The notes: generated by a model from the sequence alone, not told the origin. Positions 14,901 to 47,900 are shown, numbered from the stretch's first letter. The stretch: DNA of 64,000 nt from Gnetum montanum (GCA_015680685.1 MNCI01000918.1:85042-149041), one strand, 5' to 3'. Numbers and translations: made by a program.

Positions 14901-17900
14901 CTACAAAGAAGTGACTCAACAAGTGGCAACAAAGTAAGCAATAGGATGACTAAAAAATACAAGATAGCAAAGAACACAGTGAAGAAGATAGTAAGCAAGG
15001 TTAAACTTAGTACTTTCAATACATTTATGTAAAGCTAGGAACCAAGAGGAAGAGAAATCGATTTACAAGATGACCAGAACCTGAAACAAGAGGAACAAAG
15101 ACATATCAAATGCATCATGTCAGATGATGAAAGGATTTTGTTTATAGACAAAAATGTTGGAGCAATGAAGTGTCTATTTTCAAGAGTTTCTTAACAATGA
15201 ATTTCCTAGAGATGAAGTTGATGGCAGCAAATCAAACATAGGAATGACCGACTATACATATGCCTTTGAAGTAAAGAAAGCCCTTATGATGATGATGAAT
15301 GGTAAATCAATAGGACCAGATAATATCACATAAAGATATGGATATGGAAGATATAGGGATCACTTGGTTGACAAATTTATTTAATAAGAGTCATGAGATG
15401 GGGAAAATGCCAAATGATTGGAGTTGAAGGACCATAGTACCCTTCTACAAGAACAGGGGAGATGTTCAAAACTATGGAAACTATAGAGACATCAAACTCA
15501 TGAGTCACATCAAGAAGCTATGGGAAAGAGCTATGAAACAATGTTTAAGCCAAGAATCAACTATTTCTGAGAATCAATTTGTTTTTAGGCTTCAAAGATC
15601 AACTATGAAATATTCCTGCTATGAAAGTGATGTAAAAAATTAGGTATAAGAAGAGGAACCTCCATATGATTCATTGATTCGGAAAAAGCTTATAGAGTTC
15701 CCTTGAAAATTATTTGGTGCACACAGGCTATTCAAGACATGTCTGATGTAGCCACAACTCAAGTCTGCACCATCTGTGGCAAGACCATGGACTTCTCCAT
15801 GACGGTAGGGCTACATCAAACCCTTATTTGTTTCCCATTATCATGGATGAGTTAACTAAAGAAATTCACAATGATATTCTTTGGTATATTCTCTTTGCAG
15901 GTAAAATTGTATTGGCAGATAAATCTATGAAAGCCCACGCTACAAATAGGGAGACTTGATGAAGTGCCCTAGGAAGATTAGTAGAAGTAAAACAGAATAC
16001 ATGAAGTACAGCTTTAGTAGAATAGCAAATAATGAAGATATAAAAGTTAAAATTCAAAACCAAAGAATTACTCAATTTAAGAAATTCACATACTTGGGGT
16101 TACTTCATCGAATGGAAGGTAAGATAAACAATGATGTGAAATACAAAAGTAAAGCAGGATGGATGAAATAGGGAGAAGCTAATAACGTGCTTTGTGATTG
16201 AAGACTCTCTACTAAGTTTAAGGAAAAGTTCTACAAAACTACTATCAAACCACTGATTCTTTATGATGTGGAATGTTTGCTAATCAAAAAGCATCAAGCT
16301 CAGCGTGTAAATTTCACAAAGATGTGAATGCATAGGTGGATGTTGAGTATCAATAGGAAACACCGCATCAAAAACTCCCTTATTAAGATAAGTTTAGATG
16401 TAACACCAATAGATGGGAAGATTAAAGAATGTCATCGATAGATGGTTTGGTCATGTCTATTAGAAAGTTACTTTTGGTCATGTCTATTAGAAAGTTACTT
16501 TATTAAAGTTGAGAGGAAACAACAAATAGGTAGTCCAAAACATACTTAGGTGTTAATACTTATTTGGCTCTTGAAAGAAGTCGGCAGTGAAAAAGTATTC
16601 ATATAACTGACCCTATGAAGTTGAGATTAGGCTAGGATGATGATTCCTTAATTCATTAGATTCTACCATACTCAGATCTCTTTTACTAAAGAGGTAAAAA
16701 TAAAATTTTATTAATGAAAAAATAAGATTGAAGTACAACCACAATTGTCTTGGGATCTTAGAGATCAACCAAGGAACATGATCAATATTCAGTTGTGTAA
16801 GCAATTGAAAACAATGATCGTGATAATGCAAAAACTAAAATAATCATCCCACTGAACCAATTCATTCTTAACCTTAAAAATAAAAATTTTAATATCATAA
16901 AATTCAAATTATTATGTAGTCACCTCCTACTTATATCACATTATTTTTTCAGGTTTTTACTATTAACCAACATACTTTATATAAATTGTTTTGAAACTAA
17001 ATTTGCAACTATCTTTGATCATTGTAACATCCATAGCTTGAATATATATATCATGTGTACACCATCACCATCCTTGGGGACAGGGGTTAGGAGGTTGGGG
17101 GCATGATGTTTCAAATTATACTAAAGATTCATCATCCGTTGCAATTGGTTTCCCAAGTATTGGAGAGTTAACGAAAAGCTAAGATGTAGTGGCTAACAAT
17201 TAGTTTTAAGCAATAAAAAATTTTAAGTTAAGATGTAGTGCTTAATGGCTAGTTTTAAACAATAAAAAATTTCATGTTCAAGTTAAAAGAAGAAGGAAGG
17301 AACAAGAAAGCCATGAGCGGGAATGGGAGAGGGAGAAGGAGTGGGAGCAGGAGCGGGCATGTGAGTGATGGTAAGGATGGCAAGGACCACAACTCTGATA
17401 GATGAGATGCGATCAAGGAGGGGCCTTTGGGCAATGGTGGATCGAATGGCGGTGCTCGCCAAGACAAGGGGTTGGGTGGTTCTAAGGGGTCTCATTAGGC
17501 GGTGGAGAGGGCTGTTCTGAGAGAGGCTGGACAAGTGCTATCCATTTGGGGGCCTGAAGCTAGCAAGATTGAGGGGTGCATGCAGGAGAAGGGGTCCATG
17601 CGACTGCAGATTGCAGTGGTTCCAAATGAAGGGTTGTAGATTTTGGAGCACAACCTCATCGAGAAGTTTATGTCAGCCGATGCAAGGCCGAAGTTGGAGG
17701 CGGTTCACCAATGGGTGGTGATGCAGTGGGCTTTCTACCAAGTTGGGGTGAAGAGTCTACTTGGGAATCTTATTTTGTTTATCTTTCCGACGAAGTCAGA
17801 CCATGATTGGGTCCTTTTGGGGGGGCCCTAGTTATTTGGGGCCAGAGGGCTGGCGTTGACCCAATGGCGACCAAGGGCGCATTAGGACCCTAACTTGTTC

Positions 17901-26900: not shown

Positions 26901-29900
26901 TTTGACAGGTGCCTTTACCAGCACCAACACATGTTGCAAAGGAGGATGTGAGATTGTGGTGCAAGGCAATTCTCAACATGGGCATGACTCCCACTTTTGA
27001 ACCTTCATGCATGTGGTTTCAAGGATGGGCAAAGCTATGGGACCTAGTCAGGTAGGTTGGATAGGCAGAATTTCTGCCACTGCTAAGGGGTGACCTAGCC
27101 CTGTTTATAGGAAATTCTTCACCAATTGGTAGAATGAATGGGGTCAAGATTGACTTCACAAAAGCAACACTAACTAGGGTTTTGGATGTGCTTACTATTG
27201 GCGACCGTTTGGGACGCGACTGCCAACGAGTGTCCTCGAACAGGATTTAGGTGCCTATTGGTCTCTGGCAACACCAAGGCTCAGATACCTCCAAATAGAC
27301 TCAGTAGTTAATGTGAGTATGTGTGTGTGTTGTTGCGGCGTGCGGTTGTGAAATATGAAACGATTGCGTTGTGTGTAAACTACAAATGACTTATCTTAAA
27401 GAGATTCAACCAACTTTGCCAGTACTATGAGTTTTTGAGAGTTCCTATTTTGTTCAATTGCCTAGTCTATGCGGTCCTTATAATACCTACTTGTAACAAA
27501 AAAAGTTTTGCAAAAACATTTGANNNNNNNNNNNNNNNNNNNNNNNNNNNNNNNNNNNNNNNNNNNNNNNNNNNNNNNNNNNNNNNNNNNNNNNNNNNNN
27601 NNNNNNNNNNNNNNNNNNNNNNNNNNNNNNNNNNNNNNNNNNNNNNNNNNNNNNNNNNNNNNNNNNNNNNNNNNNNNNNNNNNNNNNNNNNNNNNNNNNN
27701 NNNNNNNNNNNNNNNNNNNNNNNNNNNNNNNNNNNNNNNNNNNNNNNNNNNNNNNNNNNNNNNNNNNNNNNNNNNNNNNNNNNNNNNNNNNNNNNNNNNN
27801 NNNNNNNNNNNNNNNNNNNNNNNNNNNNNNNNNNNNNNNNNNNNNNNNNNNNNNNNNNNNNNNNNNNNNNNNNNNNNNNNNNNNNNNNNNNNNNNNNNNN
27901 NNNNNNNNNNNNNNNNNNNNNNNNNNNNNNNNNNNNNNNNNNNNNNNNNNNNNNNNNNNNNNNNNNNNNNNNNNNNNNNNNNNNNNNNNNNNNNNNNNNN
28001 NNNNNNNNNNNNNNNNNNNNNNNNNNNNNNNNNNNNNNNNNNNNNNNNNNNNNNNNNNNNNNNNNNNNNNNNNNNNNNNNNNNNNNNNNNNNNNNNNNNN
28101 NNNNNNNNNNNNNNNNNNNNNNNNNNNNNNNNNNNNNNNNNNNNNNNNNNNNNNNNNNNNNNNNNNNNNNNNNNNNNNNNNNNNNNNNNNNNNNNNNNNN
28201 NNNNNNNNNNNNNNNNNNNNNNNNNNNNNNNNNNNNNNNNNNNNNNNNNNNNNNNNNNNNNNNNNNNNNNNNNNNNNNNNNNNNNNNNNNNNNNNNNNNA
28301 ATAATGAAAAATAATTCCAATAGCTCTATATAATTGTTTAAAATTATAGCTCCAATAGCTTTTCATTTTTACTGGTTTAAGATTTTTAAGAATACTATTG
28401 AAGCCCTTAGTAATTTTATGAACAAGGTGATGGTATAATATCTACCTTGGTATAGATGTTGATGGTAGCTAATCTATGTCAATTTATATAACTAATTTAT
28501 GTGCACTTGCACCCATATGAAAATGGCTGGAAACAAAAATTAAAATCCAAAACATCAGGTCCGAATGCAAAGGTGCCAGGCTTGGAATTGCCAGCGAATA
28601 TTTCCAAAATATCCCGCCCCTGCCAAAAATCGTTATCAACCGCCACCGCGGAAGAAGGCTCTGCCACTGCATCCAGCATCGTTGCCGTGTGGTGTTCGGT
28701 TGCTGAAGAGCAAAGGAGAAAGATCTTAAAGAAAAAAAACGATGTGCTGAACATATGGCCCTAAATATAGGGTTTCAGTTGCCTGGAATTTGTTTTGTTT
28801 TGCCCCAAATTCGCGTAGGGCTTCCTGCGTTTTTTTTGTTTCTGCGGATCATCCTCCAAATTTCTGCCGTTGATTGCAAAGTCAAGGGCGACCGTGCCAT
28901 GGATCAGAGTATCAGTGAATGACAGCATCTGGTATGGTAAGTTAAGAATGGCCCTATAACAGCCAGAAAAATCTCCACACAGTGCACGCATTGCAGAACA
29001 CAGAGAACGTCCAGGAAGGCGTCGAAGGCAGGTGGATCAACTGCATATTGGTAGAAAAATTTTGAAACTGAAATTGTTTCTGTTTTGAAAGCGGCAACGG
29101 CCATGAGAGCTCTTCCTTCCGCCGTCTTTGAACCCACGTCCCTGCAAGGTTCTGGCACAACACGCCCGGCAGGGGCGCCGCTGATTTGGGGCCAAAGAAA
29201 ACAATCGGTTTATGCGTAAAAATAGAAGCCATTACAAATCAACAAACCTTAGCACTTCTCTGCGTTAGTACCAACGCGTCTCCTTTCCAAAGCATGAGCA
29301 ATACCATAGTTTAGAGCAATACCATAGTTTAGATCATCGTATTTACTATTAATAATATCTTTTCCATTTGCAAACATCTACTGATAATTTCCAAATTTTT
29401 TATTTCCAATGCTCTTCTCTTATTTTTTTTACCAGTATCCAAATGATCAATTCTTGAACTTATTTCTAACAATGAAGAATTCCTTACTTGTCAATTCATT
29501 CACCATTGGCACATTGTCTCTTGCTATCTTCTACTTACTGCCTTTCATATGTGCATCATTATTTCCACCAATAATATTATGGTCTCTCTTAGATCCCATA
29601 CCAATGGTATGAAATAACACATTTACACTCTCCCATTCTTACAATAATGTTTAAAATGAATCTTACTGTTCCATGAAATGGCCAAATGTGCCAACACTTA
29701 CGTTCAATGATATTGTGGTTCCAATGCTATAGGGATTATAGGATGCCCAATTTTTCTTCGCCAGACCAATTCCATGAACTGCTAGTGATTAGGTCCCTAA
29801 ATCAACATCGCCAACATTGTGGCAAATAGCAGCAAAATTAGTTGAGCATATTTTTTGTACAAATAGGGAATGTGTGGAAGTTGCAGGGCACACACTTCAC

Positions 29901-32900
29901 CAAGTGCTTACAATTGGGGAGGTAGGTCAACATGCCGAGCTTTTTTCTGGCATTGTTGCCACGATGTTGGCCAAGGCGACACTTGAGTCTGATTCTAGCC
30001 TTGTGGAGGGTGGCTAGGCTGATGCCCATGACACGAGGTGTAACTATAACTTGCCACTCCATCTATAGCAAATGAAGGTAGTCAAAGTCGATTGTGGCAA
30101 ATGGGTTTCAGCCAAGTAGTGCTAGACTCACGTTGGATGATCAGGAGACAATGCCTGCACCAAAGGCAACTATGCAGGACAAAGGTTCATTAGCCATGCA
30201 ACCACGAATCGATGCGGCTAGGGAGGAGGTCGTGCTCAGGGCATGAGATGAGGGGCGTAGCATATGGAAAGCAAAGTGGGTTGCTAAGGAGGAAGCATTT
30301 TAACGGCATCTAGTTGGGTGGCAGCTCCAACACCAGGAAACAATGGATGAGCTTTGACGATAGTGGGCTACTAAGAATGTTGCAACTAGGGCGATGTTGG
30401 AAGACCAACTCTGCATAGAGATAAAGGGGGGGGGTGTTTCTCCCTTCTCCCCTGCCTCTTGTCATGATTGTACATATTTTGTTGATAATATATTCCCAAA
30501 ATTTACTCAAAAAAAAAGAACAAGGAAAAAATAATCATACTAGAAATTCATTATTTGTTGCAATTGATTTCTCAAGAATTGAAAAAAGAATAAATAGCAT
30601 TAGACTTAACAGATAGTTGAGTTGTAATAGCTGAAATTTAGTTTTAAGCAATACAAATTTTTATTTTAAAGAAATTGACAAAAAGAATTGAGTTTCAAAG
30701 GTACAACAGCTAGCTTTAGAAAAGGTATAATCATATTTTAAAAAAGGACCAAACAAGACAAAAGATAAATCAAATAAGAAACTAGTTGAAATAAGAAGAG
30801 GCAAAAAAAGGTTAATGAAAACATAAAAGAAAGCCTAATGATCTTTCAAGCATAATTAAACTTGCAACTTCTTAGATATAGGACATCAAGCCTGTAAATA
30901 GAGTCATATTATCATTAGTAATAAACATTGAAAATACTAAGTAACATTTAAAAATTATTACTAAGTACTAATAAATAAAAAGAGAGATGATGGAGCTGTT
31001 TATCCAGGGTTGATCTCCTTTGACCCGTTTGTTGCCATGTCATTTTTGGCTGCCCATTTATAACTGCCATTACTCATGTAGAAAAAACTATAGTCTTCAA
31101 AAATTTTGAAATCTGCGTACAAAGAAAAATCGGTAGAAAATATTTTTAAACAATTGAGGAAGAAATCTTGTGAAAAGAATTTGGCAGCAATAATGTTAAA
31201 AGAAAGTGTAAAAGCCTCTGGTTAAGAAAAATCTAGTCCTTAAAAAAAATTTGAGATCTATAGGAGTGAGCCATAAGGCCCTTGAAAAGAAATAAGAAAA
31301 ATGCAGGTCTTAAAAAATTCTGAGATTTGTAACAATAAGGCTTGAAGAATAATCCAGTACTGAAGAAATTCTGAGATCTGTAAGAGTAAGGCTTAAGGCT
31401 TTTGAAACGAAATCAGAAAAATTCAGTCCTTAAAAAATTCTGAGATTTGTAACAACAAGGCTTGAGGAAAATTATGGCAATGAAAAAAAAGAATTGAACC
31501 CATAACGTGAACTTGGAATTATCTGACTTTACCACCTAGCCCGCATATCAACATTTACAAAATAGATTCTAAAAAATATAAATTTAAATGATTATTATCG
31601 TCTCACCATTGCCTAAGCAATACTGCTCCAGCAATGGTGGGATCATAAATGTTTCCAAAACAGTGAAGGCAGTCAGAAGAGATCTGACACCATTTAATCT
31701 TCCCCATGAAATGATTAAAGTAAACAAGATTTTGAAAAAGATTTCTAGATTGCCTAATTTTTGTTAAAATACACCACAAAGCCAAGTGGGTAAAATAGCA
31801 TTAATCTCAATTAACATCATTAGTGTGAATTCTGGTTTCAAGAGGTTGTCTAATTTTTCTATCTTCAAAGTTTGGATGTGTTTAATCACGTTCAAACCAT
31901 ATGGATCTATTGGAACAGTTTGATTTCAAAAATTCTTGCATAATACTTGTATATCTCAGCATTCAAGAACCAAGAGAGTCTCACCTGAAAGCTTTGATAC
32001 ATGTATTAACATGTCCCCTCAAAACAGTTAATTCAAAATCTTTTAAATAACTTTGTTTTTCAATGCTAAGGCCATTATTTCTCCTCTCTTATTAAACATT
32101 ACGGAAGTTCGTTTTTAATTCCTTCCTTCCTTGGGAATCTAGTATATGATCATGACATTAGATAAGCTTCATAAGTTTCAGTACGCAAAATCAAATATTG
32201 GTACCATGGACATCATTACTCTACCAATCATAGAGATACCATGGGCATCATTCCTCCACCAATCAACCATATGATCTTAGGTCACTTTCAAACCAAAACA
32301 TTGAATACTACATCTAAATAATAGTGTTTTTCTTAAATAATTTGAACATCATAATCACATTTTACACATTCATCAAATTTCCACCTTGAATTTCACCAAA
32401 ACATTCCATTAGCATTCAACATTTCCTATAAAAATATAAATTTTAATATATATCAAAAAAAAAGATAGCATAACTTTACCCTATATGTGAGAATAATGTT
32501 TATCAAATTATAATAATCCAATAAAAAGCTGAAATAATTCCAAACTCATAGCATATCAATATCCCCTACTTTTCATTTTTAAAAATTGTATTAAACTTTC
32601 CAACAATTAGGATTGGATTTTTAAAACGATTTTTCTTTTTCTTTTTTGAGAAAATATCAAGATAAATTAAATCAAAGAAAGAATTATGTACAGCGGGATG
32701 AAGCCCAAGCCAAAACCTGCTCAGCTTCAATCAAAACTGAAAAACAAAAAAAAAAACAAACATCCCTAGACCTCCTGCCACAACCCCAAAAATCCTCTAC
32801 CAAGGCCGCAGTGAAACACCTAGACCCCTTCCTAGAACCATGCATTAATTACAAGAAACCAACCACAAAAAACCACCACCAGGGCCAAACAAGACCCACA

Positions 32901-35900
32901 TGCAACCCAAACACCCACCCGACCCACATCCCAAACATTACTCCTTTGGCGCTCTTGCTGGATCTGGCCCTAAGAATCATCCACCTCCCTATCCACCTGC
33001 AATGTTTGCAGTGGCACCCCCTGATCCTCCTGTGTCGCGAAACTCTCCTACCTTTTCCTGTGTGCCTTCATCATCTACGTTAATTTCACGTTGTGCCTCT
33101 CCAACAGGTCCTCCACCTGCTGCATGTCCCAAACCCATTGAAGATCCTCCTCCCTTGTATCTCCGCATGCATCATCTTCCATTGAGATTCCCACATCGTC
33201 CTCTCCTCGATCCATACCTGCTCCACCGCAAGCCAGCAAGCCTTGTCAATTCGCTCCTGAAGCCTTGCAAAATGCATATATCGTTGCCACTCAACCTCTT
33301 GTGAGGGCCTTAACCTCTCATCTTGCCCAAAACCACTGGTCGCTACTCCCCCATCTACCATCTCCCATTTCTCCGTTGTGAGCAGTTGAGGCCCAAACGC
33401 AATCCACCTGTGCCGCCTCTAATACACCCACTGAGGTTCCGACCTCAGTTGCCTAGGAACTTCTGTAAACCCCGCACTCCAGAGCGCCACGATCACCCCT
33501 AAATGACGCCTAGGCCACTTTTGTTTCAAGGAATCCAGAAAAAACCAAGGCATGTTAATCCTGATTCCATGCTTCAAGCACCTCAAGAAAGCAAAATGAA
33601 CACCCACAAGCTTGCAAGGGCAGCCAAACTGCACAAAATACCGGTCAATTAACACTATCATGTTCTACCACACCACAACCATCACCGCCTTACAAATGTG
33701 CCTGCTAGCCGTCTGCAGAACTGTGCCTCGAAAAAATTTAGCAGCATACATTTGAGTGTGGAGCACCAGGACAATAAGCTTTCCCTCTGCTAGCACACCC
33801 AACACCTCCTCCAGCGTCATCTCTATCACCCTAATCCGGCTGCCTCTAAAACTGGTTTCCTCCCCAACCCAGTAATTGAAGAAGCTCTCCATAGGCAGCC
33901 CAGGCTCACCTTCAATGCGTTGAAGCATGTCAACCCAACCCACCCTCTCAATCATCTCCAAAAGCTCAATGTTCCCCACAAATTCCGTAACGGCCAACTC
34001 CAAAATCAACCCCTACCCCATACTGTGTACCACTTCAGGCCACAGATGAAGCCCAACTCTGGCAACAGAAATTGGTGCAAGCAGCCTTTGCTCACGGAAA
34101 AGCAAATGATTCCTACTCTTCCATCCCATCCACAACACAACCAGCGCTTTAAAGTCTCCGCTAATTTTTATTGGAGGCAAAAGTCCTACCGCCCTCCAAA
34201 CTTCCTTCATAAACTTGCAACAATACATAAAATGTTCGAGTGGCTTGGTTTCAGCAAAACAAAGGGGGCAAATGGTATTCATATTTATCCCTGAACTCTT
34301 AAGAGTTCCCGCACCAACAATGCTTTATGCATGATAAGCCATCCGAAAGCCTTAAGCTTCTCAGGTAGCCTCCGCTGCCAAACATCATTCCACCCCATCG
34401 CCAATGGGTGCATGTTCTTAATCACCTCTGAAGGATGTTTACCCAGCAACGCCTTTGCCTCCATCTCCATAACATGTTTGCAAATATTTTTCCGCAACTG
34501 TGATCTCCTAGCGTTAGCCTCCTACCTGCGGTACTTCTGCTGCAACAACCTCACCCATGAGGCCTGCCCATCCCTCTAATCCATAAACCTGTTAACCAAA
34601 TATTGCATCCCCAACTTAACCTCATCTTGGAAGGACAACAGCCCAATTCCCCCAACCGTTCTCGATTGTGCCATTAGCTCCCAACACACCAAGTGGAGCT
34701 TCTTCCCCCCTTTGCTGCCAGACCATACAAATTGTTGAAAGATCTGGTCAATCTTTTGAATGACCCCAACCAACAAGACAATCATGGAAGCCGCAAACCT
34801 AGCTATAGCCAAAAGCACAATCAAAGCTAGCAGCATCTTCCTTTTTTGAGATAGAAACCTATTGGTCCAATGAGTCATCTTTGCATGCAATCTCTCCACC
34901 AACCCCGACCATGCTCTCTTAAGTTGCTAGTCAAAAATCGGCATCCCCAAATATGAGTCTTGCAACTAACCTGGCAAGATTCCCAGTAGCTGCACAATCC
35001 TTTCCCCCACCAAGATCGTGGTATTGATCAAACGTACAGTAGACTTTCCCCTGCTGATTTCAAGACCCAACGCCAATTCCATCTTTTCCAAGGCTTTCTT
35101 AAGTGCCTCAACCTAAGGAACAATCGCCCAAGAAAAAAGAATCATATCATCAGCATAATGGACAGCAAGGCAATGGACCCCAGTGACGTTCAGCCCCTGC
35201 ATTCCCTCAGTAATACAGTAACTCTACAGCAAATCCATAACTAAGATAAAAAGTAAAGGTGATAGCGGATCTCCCTATCATAGCCCTCTCTCCGACGCCT
35301 AGAAACCCCACAACCTCCTGTCAATGTCAAACGAATATCGATTGGAGCTTTGCATCTAAATGCAAAGATTGACAAACTCAAGATCAAAACCTTTAAGGAA
35401 CATGATCTCTCTCAACGCAACCCAGCTCATCGTGTCATAGGCCTTGGTGATGTCTAATACACATTCGATTCAACCCCCACATGGGACTATCCGCAAATCC
35501 CAATCCTCCCACTATAGCAACTTCAATTCAACCACCTATAGCTTCGTCTCCTACAAACACACCACATTGCAACCCTCGTTCCGAACCATCATTTTCAAGG
35601 TATTTCGCTTGTACGGGGTATCATGTCCCCTACAATTCTAAGAAAGAATCTTCATGGGGAAACAAACATTCATTTGTGGTACACCTCCTTCAAGGACATG
35701 TGCACTCCCAAGTTGATATCTAACTGTGTCAATTTCTTCCTCACCGCCAATGCATCCGGCCGACCAACATTACTCCCCATTGGGGGATTCATGGCCACCC
35801 CCGGCACCGATTCGGCACCCCCAAGTTTGGATGCAACAATATCCCTAAGCCTCAAACAAAAGGATCCTTGACCCAAAGTAATCCAATCTTACCTAACAAA

Positions 35901-38900
35901 GTGCAAGGGGACTATGTGGCAGGAGCATCCCCCACCACCCCAGCAACCTCCACAGGCATGTCCCCTCCAACCTTTAGCAACTCTGATGCTCCTACACCCA
36001 GATCCCGAAATAGTGACAACTCCCTAGCCTTCGTAACTGGTCCTAGCTCTCCTCCTCCACAAGTTGGCACCACGGGAACGGCCTTATTACCCCCAAGCGA
36101 CGACGCCTTTATCATGTAGCCCTTCCTTCTAACAAGGTTCCACCACCCTATGATTGGTGCAGCAGTCCCTTCAGCCTGACTATTTTAATTGAAAAATCAT
36201 CCCAAGATTTTTTATAATAATGATGAGGAAACATAAATTCTAATTAAAAAACATATTCCATATTGAAATTTTCACAAAAATGCTACTAACATTCCTCCAA
36301 ACAAGAAACAATATTCTTATTCTTCTCTAACTAATAACCAAAAGCCTCCCTCCCTAACATCTTTCAACCTCCACTATTATTGAAACTTGTCTAATTTGCA
36401 GATCTGATCAGTAGTGGCAAAGGGTTTCTCATCAGTTCTTCTGCGGAAAGTTTTCAAATTGTGATTTGAATATAAAATGAACTAATGAAACGAAGGCCTG
36501 CTCAAATGGAATGTTCATAAACAATGAGTTTAGTGAAACCTTGCAATTTCAAGGTTCTTTACAAACTGATTTTTTTTTTCGGCGTAATAAGATTTATTAC
36601 TGCAGCAAATGGATACAGTACAGAGACCAGATTTATCACAAAGAGCACAATTATGAAAATAATCATGATATTCCAGAGAGAAAAGTTATCTGTTGTGATG
36701 ATGCTCTTTATCATTAAATGAGAAAGCTATATGAAAACCTAAGAGAAGCAGATATCTGTTGTGATATTCCAGAGAAAGAAAAGTTATCTGTTGTGATGAT
36801 GCTCTTTATCATTAAATGAGAAAGCTATATGAAAACCTAAGAGAAGCAGATATGGTTGGATACTCTTATTATATAAACTTTTGAAAATGACAAAGCCTTT
36901 GAATTCTATTCCCCAACATAACTGAGAAGAGCTTCAAAGCTCTAAATGATGCATAGGAAGAATTTAGAATAAAGTAAATTTTTATAACAAAAATTTATAA
37001 ATATCTACTGAAATTTCAACCAATGGAAGCTTATCAAGGATTTGCATTAGCATCAAATATGGAAAATCAAAAATTGGGTTAACAATGTTTCAAAAAATTT
37101 ATAATCTAAAAAAAAACACCTGAATGCCAATGCGGGAAGAAAATTTCACAAGCTCTTCCTCGGTGAGTTTTTCTGAAGCACTCTTTGTGCGTGCTGTCTT
37201 TGAAACACTTCTAACTATATCTCCTGCTCTGTGACGCGCTGATAATCCTTCCTCAAAATGCATCTGACCAAACATTCGATCGATAAATTTTAACAAAATC
37301 CTCAAACCTCAGGAAATATTGTATTTACAAATAATTCTATCACAAGGCATTAAGATATCCAACATAGCAATCAAAAATTGGAAATGCATATACAAAGATC
37401 ATGTGGGAAACTTTTTCTAGGGAAATTCTGCAACATCAAATAACCGAGAACTCCTTTACTGCATTCTACTCTTCCAAAAAATCACTCCTATAACAAGGCA
37501 CTCACACTATCATTATTGAACTTAATATGATATCTTCAACCTTTTCCCTTGTTTAGTAAAAATCAATTCATTACAGATGGTAATTCATTTCTAAAAATGT
37601 TGTTCACATGCTTTCTCCTTACGAAAAGAGATAATACTTCACGATTCAATATGTTGGAAGTAATAAACAGAGAGATTGTATTGCAAAATTCAGCACACCA
37701 TTGGTGCTGATTCTATTCCCTGAATTCAAACACAAAGAACATTCCATGTATCCGATTTACATATAAAACGATAAATCACATAGCTTCATCCCATGACTAC
37801 TAACGCGTACAACAAAATGTTAGTGTAACTAATTATGCTTCTACATCACCAAAAACAAAGACTAAAAATTAGGAAAACAAATTTTGTAAGCTACTTGAAA
37901 AAGTTGGAAAACTGAAAAAATGGGCAGAAGTAAAGAAAAATCGTTAGAAAACATTAACACTATCCAAAACAAAAACATTGAAAACTTTTTAAAAGATTCG
38001 ACAGTAAATTATAGGAAGTACAAAATAAAAACCAAACCCAAAATTAAGTAGACAGGATGGGTATGAATTCCTTCATCTCTCCACTACCAACATTCCAACA
38101 CATGTTCAGCATGTCATTGATACAATTTTATGATGTTTCGTAATATGAAAACCTGTAGTATCTATAATCCTATGATGGCTACGACTCAAAGCAATAGAAG
38201 CAAGCACATAGACTATATCAAATGTAGCAAGTCAGATGACCAATGAATTTGCTTTAAAACAGGGAAATTTTTGACAAATGAAGGTTCTATGTCCAGGGTC
38301 TACTTAACAAGCATTTCCAAAAGATAAAGTTGAATGCGTAGAATCAAACCTGAGAATGACAAACTGTATCTAACTTTGAAGTAACTAAAGCTCTTATGAA
38401 GATGAAGAATGTTAAAACAACAGGAATGATAAAGAAATCACTTGGTTGACAAATTTATTCAACAAGATTCAAGAGGAGGGAAAAATGTTGCATGATTAAA
38501 GGAGAAGCACTATAATACCTATCTACAAGAACAAGGAAGACATGCAAAGCTATGGAAATTATAGAGGAATTATGTTTTTTTTTTTTTTTTGAGGAAATAG
38601 TCGAGAATGTATTACTGAAAAATATAGTACAAGAGATTACAAGTATCGGGNGGTGCGCCAACAGCGACCCCTGCAGGTTAAAAGCAATGACCCTGCTAGG
38701 GGTTCGTCAGCAGCCGACGACAGGCACAATGTGGGCGTTCCAGCTCATGCAAAATATTCAGTGTGTTTCAATGGAGCTCCGTGTCGACAAAACTAGCAGC
38801 CTGCTGGATCCTTGCATGGCCGACTCCCGTCTGTTCCGATCCGCCACTAACGTCCCCACATCCGGATGGAAGCACGCCGAGGTCCGACGGATATGTCGTC

Positions 38901-41900
38901 TGAGCTCTCCCCAAGAGTTGTTGCAGTTGATGCCCAAGATGAGGTATGGGCACCGTCCACTTCTAAGCCATTGTCGAGCACTGTGTTCGTGAGCCCGGTC
39001 CAACTGGCTCTGCCGCTGGGCCTCCTCCTCCTAGTCTCCTTCCAACTGCTCCTGTTCCGCCTCCTCCCACTCCCTTTGGGCATTTTCCTCCTGCATCAAT
39101 TCTTTCCACACTTGGACCAAGATCTCATCCTCCAGCTAGACCCGGGCTGCATCGGCCAGGAGGGTTTGTTGCCTCACCCACTCCTGCTCCCTCTCCCTAA
39201 ACTAGGCCTCCAACTCAGCCTATGCCTACGCAAGGGATTCCTGCCATTTTGTCTCCCATTCCTGCCGCTCAGCCTCACACGCCGCACTTGCGGCCTGCTA
39301 TGCGGCTTGCTACAACTCCTCGTCCCGAGTTGCGCTGCGTTCAGAGGTCTCAGGCAAAAATGAGTCCGATGTCGTGGGACTGGTTGGGGGGCACCATCCA
39401 TGCTAGCTCCGTCATTTCCGTGTGTAGGTCATTGTCAGCGGGGTCCATAGGGGTTCCCGGTTGGCCGAGGATGAGGGGCCAAGCGAGGGGGCACCCCGTG
39501 GGGGGGGTTTGCCCCCCCTCTGCCCCCCGCCAAAGGGCCAGGATGAGCCCCGAATGATGGCCCTGTCTCTGAAGTTGTAGGGCCGCTACAAAAAATCACG
39601 GTAGGTTAACCTGGCGCCCCAACTTCAAGCAACGGAGGAAGGTAAAGTGGATGCCCTGTAGCTTGGAGCCGTTGCCAGACTGGACAAAAAATCGGTCCAC
39701 CAGATCTGCTGCTCAGGCCCAGATTCGGGGCAAGGAGGATCTAGGCACTTGCCTGCTTTGCATGCGTGGCACTGGCCCATCGAAGAACAATTCCGCATCC
39801 TACAACCCTCCAATGGAAGGAAAAATGACCTCGCCAACGGCCTGGGCCCCCAGACACCTAGCAATCAAGGACTCCGTGATGGTAACCTCTCTTCCCTGAA
39901 AGTAGGTCTGATCATCGCGCCAATTCGAGAAAAACGCGTCATCTACAAGATCTGGGTCGCCTGTCAACCGCTGCAAGGGGCCATCCCAACGGCACTATTC
40001 CACCAATTCCTAGAGTTCTTCCTCCTCCTAGAACGTAGCGCAGTCAGGCTCAAAGGTCGACATGACTCCCATTGTTGCCTCGATCTTGTTTCACACACGA
40101 AGAGCTTGGGAAGCCACCAGCAGGGGCGGGGGCAGCCTGATTTACTGGAAAACAGCACGGTTTCTTGTCTTCCACGCTACCCATAAAAGTAGCGTGGCCC
40201 GAGAGTCGCCGGTGAGGCGCATCGAGGGGGTCGCCTCAATTGTCTGCCACGTGGTGCACATGTAAATGGTGTTGAACTGTTTCTGGCGCAGCGCCACACA
40301 GGGGGCAAGTGTCGTCCACAGGAAGGCTGCATCTACGCAGAAGCATGTGAATTGGCAACACATCATTTCGTAGTAACCACAGGAACATTTTGATCTTCTT
40401 GGGGAGCCGCCCCATCCAAATCTATTGCCAGCTTGACAATTGCGGGTATTTGGCCGCCATTAGTCGACGCGGCTCGAAGCCCAACCACCCCTGTGCCTAC
40501 ATCACACGTGCGTGGCGGCAGAGCATCTGCCAGGGCCTCAAATCCTGCACCCCCGCCTCCCAACGACGATATTTCGCATTCATAACACGAATCCACTGGA
40601 CCAGTTCCCCATTCGGGCACGTGAAATGGAGCAGCAAGCGTTGTTGTCCCAACATCAGCTCATCCGTGAACGACGAGATGCCCAGCCCCCCCCCCCCGGC
40701 CCCCTGCGTTATGAGGGCACGTGACCCATTCCCAGGAAACGAGGTGTAGTTTGCCCCCCCCCCCCCATTGCCCCCCGTCCAAAGGAAACGCCTGATCTAC
40801 ATGTTGATCTTGTTAATGATGTTGTTCGGAGGGGTGGCAACTGCTGCCACAAACCGAGTAATCGCCATGAGAATCCCAGATGCCACAACCAATCGCCCTT
40901 CCGAGTCAGAAAACGGTTTGGCCGGTGACCCATCCTTCGTTCAACTTTCTCCAACAATGTCCCCCAAGACATGCTCCACCCCCACTGGAAGAGTGGGATA
41001 CCCAGGTAAGAGTCTGTGATCCTTCCAAGCAGGATGTTCAGGACTTGCACGACCCAATTTTTTATTTGTGGATCCACATTAATAAAATGAGCTAAGGATT
41101 TGGCCCTGTTAATCTCTAGTCCCAACTCATCCACCAATCGGGAAAGGGCAATGTTGATGCACCGTGCTTGTGGGACCCCCACCCAACTAAGCAACATTGT
41201 GTCATCCGTATAGTGCTCCGCCTGACATTCCACCCCCGCGATGTCTAATCCGTCAACCCCCAACGTTCTACAATAAAGTTGCATCAAGTCCATAGCGATA
41301 ATGAACAACAGGGGCGAAAGTGGGTCCCCCTGCCGTAACCCCCTCCCAGGTGAGGAGAGCCCCCCCACGTCAAAGGAGAAGCCAACGGATGACTGGATGT
41401 GGATGCAAAGCTGGATAAACCCCTGGTCAAAACCTTTTCGCTGCATTATAGTAGCCAAGGCTTCCCAGCTAAGTGTGTCGTACGCCTTGGTAATATCGAG
41501 CTTGAGACAAAGCCCAAGAAAACCCGTAGTCAGAAGCAAGTGGAACACGACCCTTATGAGGATAACCTGGTCCTGCAGGGCTCGACCTTGCACAAACCCT
41601 GCTTGATTAACTCCTACCAGCTTGGGCATGAGAGGCACCAACCTATGCACAATCAATTTGGACAAGACCCGAATCAAAACGTTGCAGACCCCGATAGGAC
41701 GGAAGTGTTCTAGGCGGTGTGCCTCTGTTTGTTTTGGGATGCACACAATTCGAGAGCAGTTGATCTCCCTTCGAACCTGCCTCTTAGCCAGCATAAGGTT
41801 GAAGGCGTCCAGGATATTGGGTCCCACAATATCCAGGAAGGTCCAGAAGAACTTGAGACTCCAACCGTCCAAGCCAGGCACCTTCCCTCCTAGCATGCCG

Positions 41901-44900
41901 TTGATGGTGACGACGAGTTCCTGCCAGGAGAACGGGGTCAGCAGCCGCGTGCTGTCTTCCCCGTTCAACACCTGCTCAATTGGGACAGAAATGGGGTTGG
42001 TGGGTCGCTTGGCCCAGATCCTCTCCCAATATTGAGTCAACTCCCTAGCGACGCTCTGTGGTTCATCAATAATCCTCCCATCTTGGGTGTGTAAACAACT
42101 TGGTTGGCCCCACCCTTGTGTCTTAGCGACAGCAAAGAAAAATTTTGTTTTCTTGTCCCCTTCTTGGAGCCAGGTGACCCGTGACCTTTGTTTCCAGTAT
42201 GTTTCCTCTTCAAGGTCAAGGCCTTGGAGTTGCCGCAGGATATTTTGCTCTTCTTCATGTAGGTCCTCCCCAACCTCCTATCTAATCTGGACCTAAATAA
42301 GTTTGTCTCGAGTGCCTTGCGACCCGTCCTAAAAGAGAATTCGTCCTCCACTAGTGGGCCCTGATGGCCCATTTCAAGTGGAGTAAGCCCTCCTTAAGGA
42401 AGCTCCTGGGGTCTCCCTGGCCAGGTCGGTAATCCACCCAAACGTCCTCCACTAATGGCCTCAACCAAGGCTTAGACAGCCAAGTTGCCTCAAAGCGGAA
42501 CGGTTGGGGGGTCCAGGGCCTTTCCGGCCCAAGTGAACAGATCAAGGATCGATGATCCAAAGCGACCCTTTTCTGCCCTGTAACCTGCGCAGCCAATCGG
42601 AGGAGGAGGTCAAAACTGAGGTAGACCCGATCGATTCAGGAAAGGACGCGGTCCGAGCCTTTCCTCTTGTTGCTCCAAGTGAACTAACAGTTCCCAATGG
42701 GCAGATCCACTAATGAGTGGACTATCAAGAAATCCTAGAACCCCTGTGCGCCCGAGGGGGGGCAACGCCCCCAGATATTTCCCACAAATGCAAGCACTAG
42801 TTGAAGTCCCCAACAATTAGCCAAGCCCGGCAATCGGGCACCAGCATTGCCATGCGTTCCATCTCCTGTAGCCTCTGTTCCCAATTCTGTGCCCCATAGA
42901 AGTTGGTTAGCCAAATCCCCTAGGAGGGGACGTGGATGGTCATGGTCCATTGTGAGGCATCCACCAACGTCATGTCATAGTCAGCCAGTATAGCAAGACC
43001 TTCGGCCCGACCCATGCGGGCGTGCACGTGGGTTTTCCAGCCATCCCAAGAGAGAAGGTGAGATTCCCTCGCCTGTAACTTGGTTTCTTGGAGGCAAACA
43101 ATGTCACATTCTTCATCCCGAATGATTCTACGCAGGGTATTTCTTTTATAGGGCGTACCCTGTCCCCTACAATTCCAGCTGAGAATCTTCGTGTATGCCT
43201 GGAAGAGCAACACTGGTAGACCTCCAGAAGGGTCTGTTGTAGCCCCAAATCTATACTCCATTGGGCCTGTCTGGCCCTGGACCAGCTCTTACTCGGGCAG
43301 CCGGGGCGACCCTCCCCCTCTTGCACCACTGGGCAACAGCCCAAGTCCTCAGGTGTGGGTTCCTACTCTAGTGGCCGACAGGACTTGGTGCTCCCCCGAA
43401 CCACGTTCACCCATTCGCCCAGGGGGGAGCTCTATCCCTGGTGTNNNNNNNNNNNNNNNNNNNNNNNNNNNNNNNNNNNNNNNNNNNNNNNNNNNNNNNN
43501 NNNNNNNNNNNNNNNNNNNNNNNNNNNNNNNNNNNNNNNNNNNNNNNNNNNNNNNNNNCTGCAGACGGCCTTTACGGCCCATCATGACCTAGCCCCAATC
43601 CTCAAACATTTGTTTGGCTTGGTCCCGCGGCCGCACTGGCCGTGTCCTCTAGAACCAACAATCCTCCTAGTGCCCAGGTTTCCCACAGCTAGTACATCCG
43701 ACTCCCTTGCACTCGCAAGCCTTTGCTCTGTGTTCAAGGCCTAGTTCAACCTCCATGTTCTCAAATTCGACCCAAAGGTGTTCCTCCCCACCTAGGAGCT
43801 CCAGAACAATTTCCTAGATGAGGTCCTCATCCGCCAACCTGTGCCACCCGCAAAACCAGGCAAAGCCCATCGACGCCATGGATTGGGTGACGCTATCGAA
43901 GGTAATGAATTCGCCAAAGAAACCCGCCACCTTCTCCAGGAATTCCAAGTTCCACAGTTCCCATGGGATCCTAGAAATCTGCATCCACACCGGGGCTCGG
44001 GTGAATAAGTCTGTCTCCCGGTGCGCCCCTGGGCACCATGGAGTTAGAGCAAGCCCCCGAGCCTCGTAAAACCATGGTCCCCCCAACATCACCGAGACCC
44101 TAGCCTGTAGGGACAGGAAGATGAACAGAAGCAAGGTCTCCGACAGACTCCAGACCTCCACTTGGCCAGCTTTCCAATGCTCTTGCACCCACTTGCAGAT
44201 TAACTCCATCCGCAAGCGAACACCCCTGGAAACGAAGCGGCCAATGAGGCTCCGTTGCATGGTGCGGATCCCTTCTGTTGGGGCCTTGCTGACCTAGAGG
44301 CGCAGGGTGTGGTCGGCCCGGGAATGTGCCTCAATACCCCCATCAGGTGCTCGCACCCATTCCCCCCCGTGAGCCTGTGTGGCCCAGACCGATTGCTCCC
44401 CATCGCCTTTGCCCTCCCGTGCGTTCGTCGAGCTCTCCTCTCCTGTGCCCGTCGGCTGCTACTATGCTCCAGCGCTTGCCCGGTGTGTCTGTTGCTGCTA
44501 CGCTCCAACACCCGTCTGTCGTTCCTCCTGCTGTTGTTGCTGCGGCTGTTGCTGCTACGGTTCCATCTACCGCTGCTACTACTACGATTCTAGCCTAGAT
44601 GATTTTACCAAGCAAGACTTTTGGAATTCAATGGATTTGGTGTTTCAAGAAATTTCTTAGCAAAAAAGCATATTCATCAAAGATGGTTTTAATGGTCATA
44701 AAGGAATTATGTTGACAAGTCGCACCATGAACTTATAGGAAAGGGTTCTAGATCAATGTTTTAAGGCAAGGATCAACAATTTTTAAGAACTACAATGGTT
44801 TTATGCCAGGGAAATCAACTATGGAGGCCATTTTTTTGCTAAAGGTAACTAATGGACAAATTCAGATGTAAAGAGAAAAATTTACACATGACTCATTGAT

Positions 44901-47900
44901 TTGGAGAAAGCTTACAATAGAGTCCCTTGAGAGATTATTTGGTTCACATTAGAGAGAACATATTTTTATTGGACACATCATATGATAGAGCCACCACTAG
45001 ACTCTACACTGTCTATAGAGAAATTGCTAACTTCCCTGTGAATATAGGGTTATAGCAAGGATCTGTTCTAAGTAACTACTTGATTGCTATTATCATGGAT
45101 GAGCAAACTATAAAAATACAATCTAATATCCCTTGGTGCATGCTCTTTGTGGATGATATTGCATAAAAAAAGAATCATCACCCAAAGCCACAATGCTCAT
45201 CTAACCAAGTGGGATCACAGGAGGGTTGGTAGATAAGCGAAAGCCTAGCCTCTTCAAATAGCTGTGCCCAGGCTCAAACCCTGATCTTTGACTTGAGAAA
45301 GGAGTACCTTACATCACTCCAAGTGGTGGTCCCTATGATATTGCATAGGATAAATCTAAGTCCTTACTACAAAAATGAACACTTGGAGAAGAACCCTAGA
45401 ATCCAAAGTGTTCAAGATTATTAAAAGTAAAATGAAATACACAAAGTGCATTTTTAGTGGAAAAGAAAGTAGCGAAGATGTGAAGAGTAAAATTCAAAGT
45501 CGAAATAAAACAAATTAAGCAATTCAAATACTTGGAATCTCTATGAGACCAACAATGACATAACAAACAAAATTGAAGCAAGATAGAAAAAATAGCAAGA
45601 GGTTAGTGATATGCATTGTGATTAAAAGAATTCTGACTAGATTAAAGGGAAACATATTCAAGATATAGGAATCAAGGTCAATTCAATTCTTAATAGAGAT
45701 AAACAATGAAAAAGAATTCATACAACCAACCCCATGTAGTTGAAATAAGACTAGGTGATGATGATTAGCCATGTATATGCAAGCACTTTTAACTTTATTA
45801 ATCTGAAATACCAATAATATAAAAATGAAATGTGAAAAAAAAAAGATAATAAATTTATGCCTTAATTATTTTATTAGTTTGTTTAGCATTTTTGCTCTTT
45901 AGAAGTTTAAAATCAAATTTATCTTAGGACCTTGTGAGAATTATTCAAAACATTCAGCCAAAAAAAATCATGACTTTTTGAAAAAGGTCAATTAGCTACC
46001 TTTTGGAGAATAATTAGGGACAAATACCATAGTTTCTAAGCTTCATGGTTCATATGATCTGTGTTTGTTCAAACTTCATCTTCCTGTAATTTGTTATAGT
46101 ATACCTAGTTATATTTGATAATTTTACAATCTAAAGCCTGAAAAAAATAGCAGCATCCATTGTTTTGTTTTCCAATGAGCTCTTTCAACAACCTTTTCTT
46201 ACAATTTTCTAGAATTGTAAGACTGATTGCTTTGGAATACCTCAACTCCCTACCCTCCTTTTGCTGTTATATACAGGTTAGCATTGGTTCTGTTATATCA
46301 GTATTAGCCAAGCCACCTGCATCATGTTCCATGATTTTTCACAAATTTTATTTATTTACAGGACATCTTTCCACGTCTTAAGATTCTCCAGAATTTCCTT
46401 CATCTATCTCGATGGCATGCCTTGGTCATGGAAACACCACTAGGATTCAAAACTACAATGATATTCCTAAAATAGTTTACAATATTCTTTTCTCTTGGTT
46501 GCATTCTGCAATTATTAATCTTTGTAATCAAACTCTATCTCACCGTTTCATCGATTTCTCTATCCATTTGGTATTGCTGGTTCCAAATTTCATATGCATT
46601 CTTCATTTCATATATCAACCTTGCTATATCAATCATCATGGCATTCCAGTTTATTGCTGTAGTTACATCATTAATTTAAGAGAAACGGACTGGCACGTAA
46701 CTTCAGTAAGACCTGCATCATCAGAATCAGAACAACTTGATCGCAACAAAATTCTATTTCTCTTCACTGAGGTGCCATCAGGAAGTCCCAAACACTCGCT
46801 GCAAAAGGGTTGACTCAAGACAACAGGTTCTAAATTGTGATCATTTCCTTTTCAAAACCTGCTGCAGCTGCACAAGCTCAAACTCTGCAGTTATCATCGG
46901 ACTGAAGCTGTTCTGGATCTGCAGAATTTGAGTCGCATTGCCCCAATACCATGTTGTACTACGGAAATAGTACTCTTAAGAACTTAGTGTGGCGGGAGCA
47001 ATCAAGAGAGAGAACTTTTATTGCAATCAGCTTTATATTTTGCAATGTATACTTTAATGTTAACATAGTGACCTGGCCACTATAGAATGTAGGATTCGTC
47101 TGGCCGGCGCAGATATGACCTGAACAGAAAAATAACCGTTGGCGCTCTTTTCTTCCGTTGGGCGCCGCTGCGCTGCTGAGCCCTCCTGCACTCCACCTCC
47201 TGCAGTGCTGTCGTCGCCATCGCTCACCCAGTGTTTGGTGGGGAGCAGGGCAGCTTTGACGTTACCAGCTACCCCTGTCGCGATTTCTGTTTTTCTTGGC
47301 CGTTTTTTTCTTTCTGCCATGCTGTCCCGGACCTTGCCCACGGTGGGTGGACACGTACACTGGTGGTGAGGGTTTTCCTCCAGTCAAGGTTGTAGTGTCA
47401 GGAAAGCGCGTGGCCCAGGCGTGGGCAAGTCACAATGATGGATTCATCAACTTCTGCATTTCCTCAGGGAAGTTCATCTACCTTACCTCAAATTGATTTT
47501 CTTTTACCGGATGATATTTTTGAAGTAGTTTCTAAAGATTTCACATCTCGTTTTCTGTTTTTTCAAATTGTGGGGTTTTTACCAAGGTCCCCAAGTTTCA
47601 ACAAAATTCACCTCACTATTGAACATCTCACTAATAAACTAGCTCAAGATCCCTTCAATACTCTAGTTCACGAGGAGCTTGCTAGAGCACGCGTTGCCTT
47701 CCAACATTGGGAAGTGTACCGAGCACAAAGTGCCTTAACTAAAAGTCGGCTCACTTGGTAAAATATTCAAGACGAACACTGTAAGGAATTTTTTAAATAT
47801 CTTAATGCTGCTTCCCCTTCGCATGCTATTGACAAAATCTCATGTGATGGTACCACCATTACTGACCACAATAGTATCCTCTCTTTTCTTAAGAACCACT

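Follow-up and report, generated by a model that had tools for sequence, protein, structure and literature searches.

A dead L1 copy of Gnetum montanum with a probable J-domain at the end of its ORF2

Can the polymerase protein of a LINE end in a J-domain, the domain that defines the Hsp40 co-chaperones? The question is raised by copy D, one of six L1 copies (A to F) in a window of 64,000 nucleotides from Gnetum montanum, which is the whole stretch of DNA that was analysed. According to the original prediction, ORF2 of this copy stays open beyond the zf-RVT region, apart from stops and frameshifts, and runs through a helical block (here block A) and a coiled coil into a J motif, all of it inside the TSD-bounded element and upstream of the poly(A) tail.

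Results

Copy D is a decayed L1-clade element

Copy D lies on the minus strand and spans positions 38575-44701, with a poly(A) tail and 10-bp TSDs on either side. The flanking sequences rejoin as a single older RT reading frame across the insertion point (...YRGIM/LTSRTMNL..., the slash marking this point). Its features are as follows:

38565-38574, no strand: TSD AGGAATTATG on the 3' side, an exact 10-bp repeat of 44702-44711
38575-38590, minus: poly(A) tail, T16 on the plus strand, read directly
38591-38706, minus: 3' UTR, without conserved frame; family read depth 0-21 near its end
38707-38958, minus: J-like domain, CPYLILG..., HPD at 38860-38868; Pfam, PDB and ESM searches
38959-39354, minus: E/Q/R-rich probable coiled coil (by composition), some 132 codons, 7 of them stops in D, sharing the frame of the J piece
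39355-39526, minus: poorly conserved G/P-rich linker with D's frameshift; family depth 168-252, the lowest of the stretch
39527-40072, minus: block A, a domain that is conserved and has about 180 aa; no Pfam match, found by tblastn in five other copies
40073-40144, minus: junction at which block A is joined in frame to zf-RVT; 97% of family depth shows Trp where D has its stop at 40091
40145-40421, minus: zf-RVT, which in plant L1s forms the zinc-binding C-terminal region of ORF2 (PF13966, E 8.4e-11, match 40239-40421)
40709-42040, minus: reverse transcriptase (PF00078 RVT_1, E 7e-24)
42920-43261, minus: apurinic-type endonuclease, N-terminal part (PF03372 Exo_endo_phos, E 1.9e-10)
43814-44260, minus: ORF1 with DUF4283 (PF14111, E 1.1e-20)
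44702-44711, no strand: TSD AGGAATTATG on the 5' side, matching 38565-38574

The combination of TSDs with a 3' poly(A) tail is that of the L1 clade, and so is the order revealed by Pfam, i.e. ORF1 followed by an ORF2 with APE endonuclease, RT and zf-RVT; the RT piece, with 443 aa, is the longest open piece of ORF2. In copy D the frame is interrupted by 15 stops and by at least one frameshift: along its path we counted 8 stops in 264 codons, and then 7 in-path stops plus the terminal one in 215 codons. This makes it a dead copy of an L1-clade LINE, polyadenylated and with TSDs at its flanks. Raw RNA-seq reads matched only related copies, on both strands and none with an identity of at least 99%.

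The ORF2 frame extends beyond zf-RVT

Downstream of zf-RVT, the ORF2 frame of copy D continues for about 460 codons that comprise block A, the E/Q/R-rich coil and the J-like segment. The motifs FFSNWRDDQTYFQGREVTITES..., LVDRFFVQSG... and HSGLILALW follow zf-RVT in its own frame (frame 0; 40144-39353, minus strand), and a single frameshift near 39350-39400 separates this part from the E/Q/R stretch and CPYLILGIN...CFHPD (38860-38952, minus strand). Family reads show homopolymer indels at 39485-39500 in the linker. The coil consists to 68% of E, Q, R, K, A and L, and to 2% of P and G. An antisense ORF of 165 aa (38866-39363, plus strand) was dismissed as a Leu-rich mirror image of this E/Q-rich coil.

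We compared the stops of copy D with its family, the depth of which is given as the number of reads with at least 80% likeness to copy D. At five of the in-path stops, among them 40091, 40011, 39802 and 39222, most family reads have a sense codon: within block A, the stop at 40011 is replaced by Trp in 63% of family depth, and within the coil that at 39222 by Gln in 68%. The same applies to the terminal stop past the J piece: positions 38758-38760 encode Trp in 91% of family depth, so that the ancestral frame was about 17 codons longer. Wherever a copy retains the junction, block A lies downstream of zf-RVT and in its frame, and thus belongs to ORF2. In copy E the frame is open across the junction, and in copy C it is open until a single stop just past the MG of the opening motif of block A. 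We also considered that ORF2 might be separated from block A by a conserved stop or a readthrough signal, and rejected this, since the family majority and the other copies have Trp where D and F share a stop.

The predicted architecture is borne out by these observations: the motifs stand in the frame of zf-RVT, several stops are sense codons in the family, and the frames together with the recurrence in copy F identify the three parts as part of ORF2, within the TSDs and upstream of the T16 stretch. A consensus stop between coil and J motif, which would have spoken against the prediction, was looked for; the stops of copy D in the coil and the J segment are mostly private to it.

Block A is a conserved domain with few recognizable relatives

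Block A opens with MG.TPTFEP and holds FFSNW...TITE in addition to the two motifs mentioned above. It is found downstream of zf-RVT in the five other, divergent copies of the window, and family depth reaches its peak here (12,811 at 39648-39711). Searches of Pfam and PDB gave no match, and an AlphaFold2 model (pLDDT 43) was too weak for a fold search. Among 1.84 billion protein representatives, a profile search returned a single true match, P0003, a Welwitschia transcript ORF of 91 aa, and no full-length relative; the other four of the five matches were repeat artefacts (UCH, ankyrin/DUF7104). Protein databases contain next to nothing of block A and the coil, since gene prediction is run after TE copies have been masked.

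The W-R-x-D/E...F...E-x-T-I-T motif of block A is reminiscent of the N-terminus of the plant mobile domain (PMD), presumably no more than a lead. HMMER searches with pieces of copies C, D and F and with P0003 found no match to Transposase_32 (PF20167), PMD (PF10536) or ATHILA ORF1 (PF03078) at E values up to 10, and among ESM features a Transposase_32 cluster appeared only at rank 30 (0.90, 149/256 features), behind unnamed clusters at the top (0.93). PF20167 has been described as kin to Athila ORF1 (PMC11728184). These three, which occur as accessory domains in LTR retrotransposons and MULEs of plants, resemble block A in size, but block A has no HMM match to them and no PDB relative, and membership is not established.

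A second, very divergent copy carries the same tail

Copy F is 5'-truncated and was delimited by tblastn and alignment:

54842-56552, plus: copy F, very divergent, with the same tail as D
54842-55006, plus: zf-RVT
55199-55743, plus: block A
55927-56358, plus: coil
56337-56552, plus: J-like segment with HPN and two frameshifts

Block A, the coil and J helix II of copy F stand in a single frame. Coil and J segment of D and F align with a score of 107, as compared to 23 +/- 4 for shuffles; for the third J fragment of F a local alignment with X at the breaks was used, the MAFFT alignment being incorrect. Judged by these alignments, the likeness of the tails is beyond chance, with block A recurring in five other copies and coil plus J in F. 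The residues common to D and F are those of the J signature, namely Y..(L/M)G, the basic helix II and F-H-P. At the position of HPD in copy D, copy F has HPN, and its C-terminal end reads KR..W.QY, similar to the KR..YD.Y with which J-domains usually end.

Copies B, C and E, i.e. three of the six, end after a shorter coil without a J-domain, and copy A becomes unreadable shortly past block A. A local HMM of the D/F J segment, run on all six frames of the window, detected no J remnant in A, B, C or E. The J-domain is therefore not a trait of all L1s in the window; only D and F, two of the six copies, carry it.

The terminal segment resembles the N-terminal half of a J-domain

The original prediction had named the YxxLG and HPD motifs at the spacing of J-domains, and both are in place: 26 residues separate the Tyr of Y..LG from the His of HPD in copy D, the latter following a basic helix II. 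E. coli DnaJ has the same spacing. Two family-majority differences in helices I-II (38918 and 38922) bring copy D even nearer to the usual J pattern D-x-S. The best Pfam match of the J piece is DnaJ (PF00226; E 0.055, 14.0 bits, model positions 2-33 of 63), which stays below the gathering score of 27.8 bits in this decayed pseudogene fragment; the J pieces of copy F, likewise a decayed pseudogene fragment, gave no DnaJ match in Pfam. With phmmer against PDB, all eight matches of copy D alone were J-domains (E 0.26-1.9), and a profile of D and F matched exclusively J-domain chains (36 of 36, best E 0.0028), among them DNAJA1, dnj-12, Sis1, Sec63, DnaJ and CbpA. ESM features point to the same family: the nearest three named clusters of the J piece carry PF00226 (DnaJ clusters, 0.87-0.89), and its ten best family-bearing matches all fall within one family or clan.

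Helices III-IV present a different picture. The halves that follow HPD show homology between D and F (score 36 versus 18 +/- 3.5), and a profile search with them placed TCERG1 FF domains on top (E 0.04) and returned no J-domain. A search for homologous proteins with the J piece found none within length limits that exclude a full-length ORF2. The J identity resides in about 40 N-terminal residues, the C-terminal half being unrecognised as J. Taken together, the terminal segment of copy D is a probable J-domain: the claim is upheld by DnaJ as the top Pfam match, by the J-only matches of the D+F profile and by ESM, but neither the Pfam threshold nor helices III-IV lend it support, and the single-sequence AlphaFold2 model (pLDDT 50.7, helices only at residues 14-23 and 32-45) is too poor to display a J fold.

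The J segment is conserved and has diverged together with ORF2

Between D and F, the J segment has a pN of 0.40 and a pS of 0.77, both uncorrected as synonymous sites are saturated and the NG86 dS is beyond correction; the ratio of 0.52 (bootstrap 0.37-0.71) stems from some 58 codons, the alignment of which was guided by protein similarity and makes the estimate err on the low side. The ratios elsewhere are similar (block A 0.30-0.59, zf-RVT 0.38). With pS saturated, this comparison indicates that the segment is not under neutral evolution, which would have spoken against the original prediction. At 43%, the D-F identity of the J segment is in the range of the other ORF2 domains (41-59%), and the segment has thus co-diverged with the element. 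Family depth in J helices I-II is 2,614-3,062, four to ten times that of the adjacent coil.

Discussion

Our work supports the idea that copy D is the remnant of an L1 whose active ancestors possessed an ORF2 with zf-RVT, block A, coil and a terminal HPD J-domain in one frame, and we regard this as the likely explanation. In these ancestors, the frame would have run uninterrupted from zf-RVT via block A (about 180 aa) and the coil (about 130 aa) to the J-domain. Block A and the coil would be common to all L1 lineages in the window, and the J-domain may have been gained or retained by one old sub-lineage that includes D and F.

The terminal segment might instead be a conserved basic helical tail of ORF2p, e.g. 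a nucleic-acid- or protein-binding helix, in which HPD arose by chance and which does not engage Hsp70. The sub-threshold Pfam match to half of the model, the unrecognised C-terminal half, the poor fold model and the HPN of copy F would all agree with such a tail. Yet a profile that finds nothing but J-domain chains, and finds them better once F is added, is hard to reconcile with it, as are the independent indication of DnaJ by ESM features, the J signature among the residues common to D and F and the KR..W.QY end of copy F; we therefore consider a mere helical tail unlikely. It is also conceivable that the J segment derives from the mRNA of a host J-protein, a piece of which was acquired by template switching or 3' transduction and carried along as passive, untranslated and unselected sequence. 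L1s are known for transducing or capturing host sequence, and the segment is present in only two of the six copies. This scenario is very improbable, as the segment shares the frame of the coil in D as well as in F, its pN is well under the saturated pS, it is better kept across the family than the neighbouring coil, and it is as diverged as the rest of ORF2, implying that it was retained over a long time.

Somewhat less remote, though still improbable, is a separate ORF3 product of block A, coil and J, whose translation would begin at the Met of MG.TPTFEP, either through reinitiation or on an internal or subgenomic transcript. Met-Gly is kept in D, F, B and the Welwitschia P0003, the start of which falls exactly there, and both D and F have a stop seven codons upstream of this Met. 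At the place of this stop, however, 97% of family depth has Trp, as do copies A, B, C and E, the stops that follow zf-RVT lack conserved positions, block A shares the ORF2 frame in every copy, and the frame crosses the junction in E and, up to the one stop just past MG, in C.

If the terminal segment is indeed the J-domain of an ORF2p, it is tempting to speculate about its role. The architecture, the continuity of ORF2, its conservation and the likeness to J-domains are established here; from there we infer a docking to Hsp70. The J-domain would dock ATP-bound Hsp70 via HPD and trigger ATP hydrolysis, and Hsp70 could then clamp ORF2p or its RNP in cis. This might help the very long ORF2p to fold into an RNA-binding, priming-competent state or, alternatively, remodel a coil-mediated RNP. 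We give about even chances to the idea that an old, abundant gymnosperm L1 lineage encodes its own Hsp70 co-chaperone, i.e. a functional J-domain that is tethered to the C-terminus of the RT by way of the coiled coil and a TE-specific domain and recruits Hsp70 in cis; the purpose would be RNP assembly, remodelling or the evasion of silencing. Hepadnaviral RT and telomerase depend on host Hsp70, Hsp40 and Hsp90 for attaining the state in which they bind RNA and are competent for priming, and chaperones are co-purified with the L1 RNPs of humans. In plants, J-domain proteins are also members of complexes for TE silencing and of chromatin complexes, as exemplified by SILENZIO in the MBD5/6 complex (PMC10651127) and by the J-proteins associated with PICKLE (bioRxiv 10.64898/2026.09.14.751395). 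Since plant J-domain proteins act in such complexes, a TE-borne J-domain could be a counter-silencing device.

If true, this would be the first case of a J-domain built into the polymerase of a retrotransposon, and it would parallel the polyomavirus T antigens independently. A J-domain hard-wired into ORF2p would indicate a chaperone dependence strong enough for the element to encode it, and would provide a natural setting in which to ask at which step target-primed reverse transcription requires Hsp70. With block A and the coil, the set of modules known from the ORF2 of plant L1s grows by two. In line with the original prediction, which knew of no such LINE, full-text searches of the literature found no description of a LINE with a J-domain.

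Copy D shares TSDs, poly(A) and the order of DUF4283 ORF1, Exo_endo_phos, RVT_1 and zf-RVT with the plant L1-clade LINEs. The ORF1 of plant L1s carries DUF4283 or a zinc knuckle, and some of these elements have an archaeal-type RNase H after zf-RVT. It is at this place that copy D has its accessory part: instead of RNase H, it has about 460 extra codons with block A, coiled coil and J-like domain. With the J-domain proteins (PF00226, Hsp40 co-chaperones) it has Y..LG, a basic helix II and HPD at canonical spacing in common, and its appended domain can be compared to class C J-proteins, in which the J-domain is joined to a client-specific module. It differs from them by the position of the domain at the extreme C-terminus of a retrotransposon polymerase, by the sub-gathering score and by the unrecognisable helices III-IV. 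The large and small T antigens of polyomaviruses carry a J-domain that recruits host Hsc70, and thus provide a case of a parasitic element harnessing this chaperone with a J-domain of its own. This analogy is one of mechanism only and implies no sequence kinship: the T antigen J-domain is N-terminal, in a regulatory protein of a DNA virus without RT. The proposed interplay of ORF2p and Hsp70 would be akin both to this viral J-domain and to the chaperone dependence of hepadnaviral RT and telomerase.

Copy D is an L1 insertion with an extended ORF2

The L1 element on the minus strand at 38575-44701, termed copy D, had been taken for an L1 copy from its sequence, and this is borne out: L1 domains, a target site duplication (TSD), a poly(A) and flanks that merge into one continuous older reverse transcriptase frame when the element is taken out identify it as a bona fide near full-length insertion. 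Its body has a GC content of 55% vs 32-33% in the flanks. The frame at the end of zf-RVT (...NRAVFQ) goes on unchanged into the extension, for which the original prediction had given the coordinates, the motifs and a length of about 450 codons, all of them correct on reading the frame of copy D. The path contains 15 in-frame stops ahead of the terminal stop; copy D is thus dead.

Features of copy D and its ORF2 extension
44702-44711 and 38565-38574: 10-bp repeat AGGAATTATG, bounding copy D on both sides
43814-44260, minus: ORF1 with DUF4283, upstream of the reverse transcriptase
42920-43261, minus: endonuclease (PF03372), upstream of the reverse transcriptase
40709-42040, minus: reverse transcriptase (PF00078), 443-aa open piece, Pfam E 7e-24
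40239-40421, minus: zf-RVT (PF13966), same frame as the reverse transcriptase, Pfam E 8e-11
Between zf-RVT and block A, minus: junction, a short stretch
40072-39527, minus: block A, with MG.TPTFEP at its start and FFSNW...TITE, LVDRFFVQSG and HSGLILALW within
Between block A and coil: G/P-rich linker, one frameshift in copy D
39354-38959, minus: E/Q/R-rich coil, ~132 codons, 68% E+Q+R+K+A+L and 2% P+G
38958-38761, minus: J-like segment, 64 residues from CPYLILGIN, HPD 26 residues past the Tyr
38575-38590: T16 run, the poly(A) on the minus strand, end of copy D

The insertion target was an older, AT-rich, decayed element bearing a reverse transcriptase (38380-38574 and 44712-44960, plus strand, ...IPIYKNKEDMQSYGNYRGIM / LTSRTMNL...), a relative of which, 70-75% identical, lies at 15503-16058. 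About 105 bp of AT-rich sequence (44597-44701) separate the GC-rich body from the 5' TSD; they could represent what is left of a 5' UTR, sequence added without a template or by transduction, or a piece of the target. N runs (assembly gaps) are present at about 43440-43550, inside copy D between ORF1 and endonuclease, and at 49001-50000. A 165-aa Leu/Phe/Pro-rich open frame antisense to the coil (38866-39363, plus) was rejected as a gene; it mirrors the GAG/CAG-rich coding sequence. The region 17000-57000 is unusually LINE-dense: six L1 copies of deeply divergent subfamilies (30-60% amino acid identity), some nested or interrupted, form GC-rich islands (45-58%) in a background of 27-38% GC within the 64 kb.

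The extension belongs to the ORF2 frame

A tblastn search placed block A directly behind zf-RVT, and in its frame, in five further L1 copies of the window; the L1 copies share nearly nothing by blastn and 30-60% identity at the protein level.

Further copies of block A
21.6-22.5 kb (approximate)
26.6-30.0 kb, split by an AT-rich insertion
34.3-33.4 kb, minus
52.4-53.3 kb
54.8-55.7 kb

The junction between zf-RVT and block A is open in copy E; in copy C the frame stays open as far as one stop, placed directly behind the MG with which block A begins. Moreover, public reads and contigs mapped on 38560-40460 at at least 80% likeness provided thousands of family fragments, and we compared the places where these differ from copy D. 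Among the 40 best-supported differences, four in-path stops of copy D are sense codons in the family majority, with Trp at 40091 (97% of family depth) and 40011 (63%) and Gln at 39802 (76%) and 39222 (68%), and so is its terminal stop at 38758 (Trp, 91%). The stop that closes the J piece is therefore private to copy D, the frame having continued for ~17 more codons. Overall, the differences between copy D and the family are mostly transitions (C>T at 171 places, G>A at 141, A>G at 117, T>C at 77), and most stops of copy D, TAG or TGA, stand at CAG or TGG codons of the family, a pattern in keeping with a methylated copy that decayed by deamination.

As an alternative to a fusion with ORF2, a separate product might be made from the conserved Met of block A, and P0003, a Welwitschia transcript ORF resembling block A, begins exactly at this residue. 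The stop common to copies D and F, seven codons ahead of the MG motif, is the family Trp at 40091, which copies A, B, C and E also have; no terminator is thus conserved on the way from ORF2 into block A. In copy F (54842-56552, plus), a single frame holds block A, the coil and J helix II. Taken together, one long ORF2 including block A, coil and J is the best reading. The conserved opening MG[VAM]TPTFEP (40046-40072, minus; 55199-55225, plus; about 26990, plus; P0003) matches the N-myristoylation pattern G-x-x-x-[ST]; it might mark the point where translation of block A, coil and J as a protein of their own starts internally.

Block A has no relative in Pfam or the PDB, and an ESM search reached a Transposase_32 cluster only at rank 30. 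This family has been tied to Athila ORF1 (PMC11728184), and a PMD/Transposase_32 relationship is a lead. A block A profile retrieved one true relative among 1.84 billion representative proteins: P0003, a 91-aa ORF from the Welwitschia mirabilis transcriptome with 37% identity to copy F. Going by this relative, the host is probably a gymnosperm and may be a gnetophyte.

The last segment is probably a J-domain relative

The original prediction saw a DnaJ/Hsp40 J-domain at the end of ORF2. In Pfam, DnaJ is indeed the best match of the copy D piece (E 0.055, model positions 2-33 of 63), but its 14 bits do not reach the gathering threshold (27.8 bits). With phmmer against the PDB, all 8 matches were J-domains (E 0.26-1.9). 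The homologous segment of copy F (56337-56552) has two frameshifts and reads HPN; it aligns to that of copy D with a score of 107 vs 23 +/- 4 for shuffles. A profile built from copy D and the first two fragments of copy F found J-domain chains in 36 of 36 PDB matches (best E 0.0028), including DNAJA1, dnj-12, Sis1, Sec63, DnaJ and CbpA. The nearest named ESM-feature neighbours of the piece are DnaJ clusters (0.87-0.89), and two family-majority differences in helices I-II shift copy D toward the usual D-x-S pattern. The J pieces of copy F alone gave no DnaJ match in Pfam. The halves behind HPD are homologous between the two copies (p about 0.002), and as a profile they retrieved FF domains and no J-domains. 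The single-sequence AlphaFold model of the piece is weak (pLDDT 50.7). Judging by helices I-II and the HPD motif, we consider homology of the last segment to J-domains quite probable. As had been supposed, a LINE of this architecture seems new: our full-text literature search found no LINE with a J-domain.

At 38808, in the post-HPD part, a 1-nt insertion relative to copy D makes up 28% (X1) and 11% (X2) of the DNA depth. Of 33 RNA reads, 16 show it, and copy F has one extra residue at the same place; sub-families may differ in frame here.

Constraint and distribution of the J-like segment

Non-neutral evolution had been expected of the segment, and its pN/pS between copies D and F of 0.52 (bootstrap 0.37-0.71) agrees with this, as an uncorrected value from only ~58 codons at saturated synonymous sites (pS 0.72-0.86, where the NG86 correction fails), in a protein-similarity-guided alignment of two copies that have decayed neutrally since insertion. 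On the same uncorrected basis, pN/pS was 0.59 (0.45-0.78) for block A parts 1-2, 0.30 (0.20-0.44) for parts 3-4 and 0.38 (0.24-0.55) for zf-RVT; nonsynonymous change is thus far below the saturated synonymous change. In J the two copies are 43% identical, as much as in the other domains; the J-domain has thus long been carried along with this lineage. Family depth (at least 80% likeness) reaches 12,811 in the core of block A and 2,614-3,062 over J helices I-II, against 237-758 in the adjoining coil bins; the higher depth over J than over the coil indicates a conserved coding part.

A local HMM of the segment found no J remnant in the four remaining L1 copies of the window (A, B, C, E). Copy A is unreadable shortly past block A, and in copies C (33090-34009, minus), E (52950-53870, plus) and B (29742-30520, plus) block A is followed by a shorter E/Q/R/W-rich coil and then the poly(A). 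The J-domain thus marks a sub-lineage within this L1 group.

A possible role in Hsp70 recruitment

It is tempting to speculate that the C-terminal J-domain, held by the coil, would dock ATP-bound Hsp70 via HPD and set off ATP hydrolysis beside ORF2p, so that Hsp70 would be loaded in cis onto ORF2p or its RNP. This might help to fold a polymerase of >1,600 aa, activate RNA binding and priming, or remodel coil-mediated oligomers. It could also disturb silencing complexes that themselves contain a J-protein, such as SILENZIO/MBD5/6 (PMC10651127).
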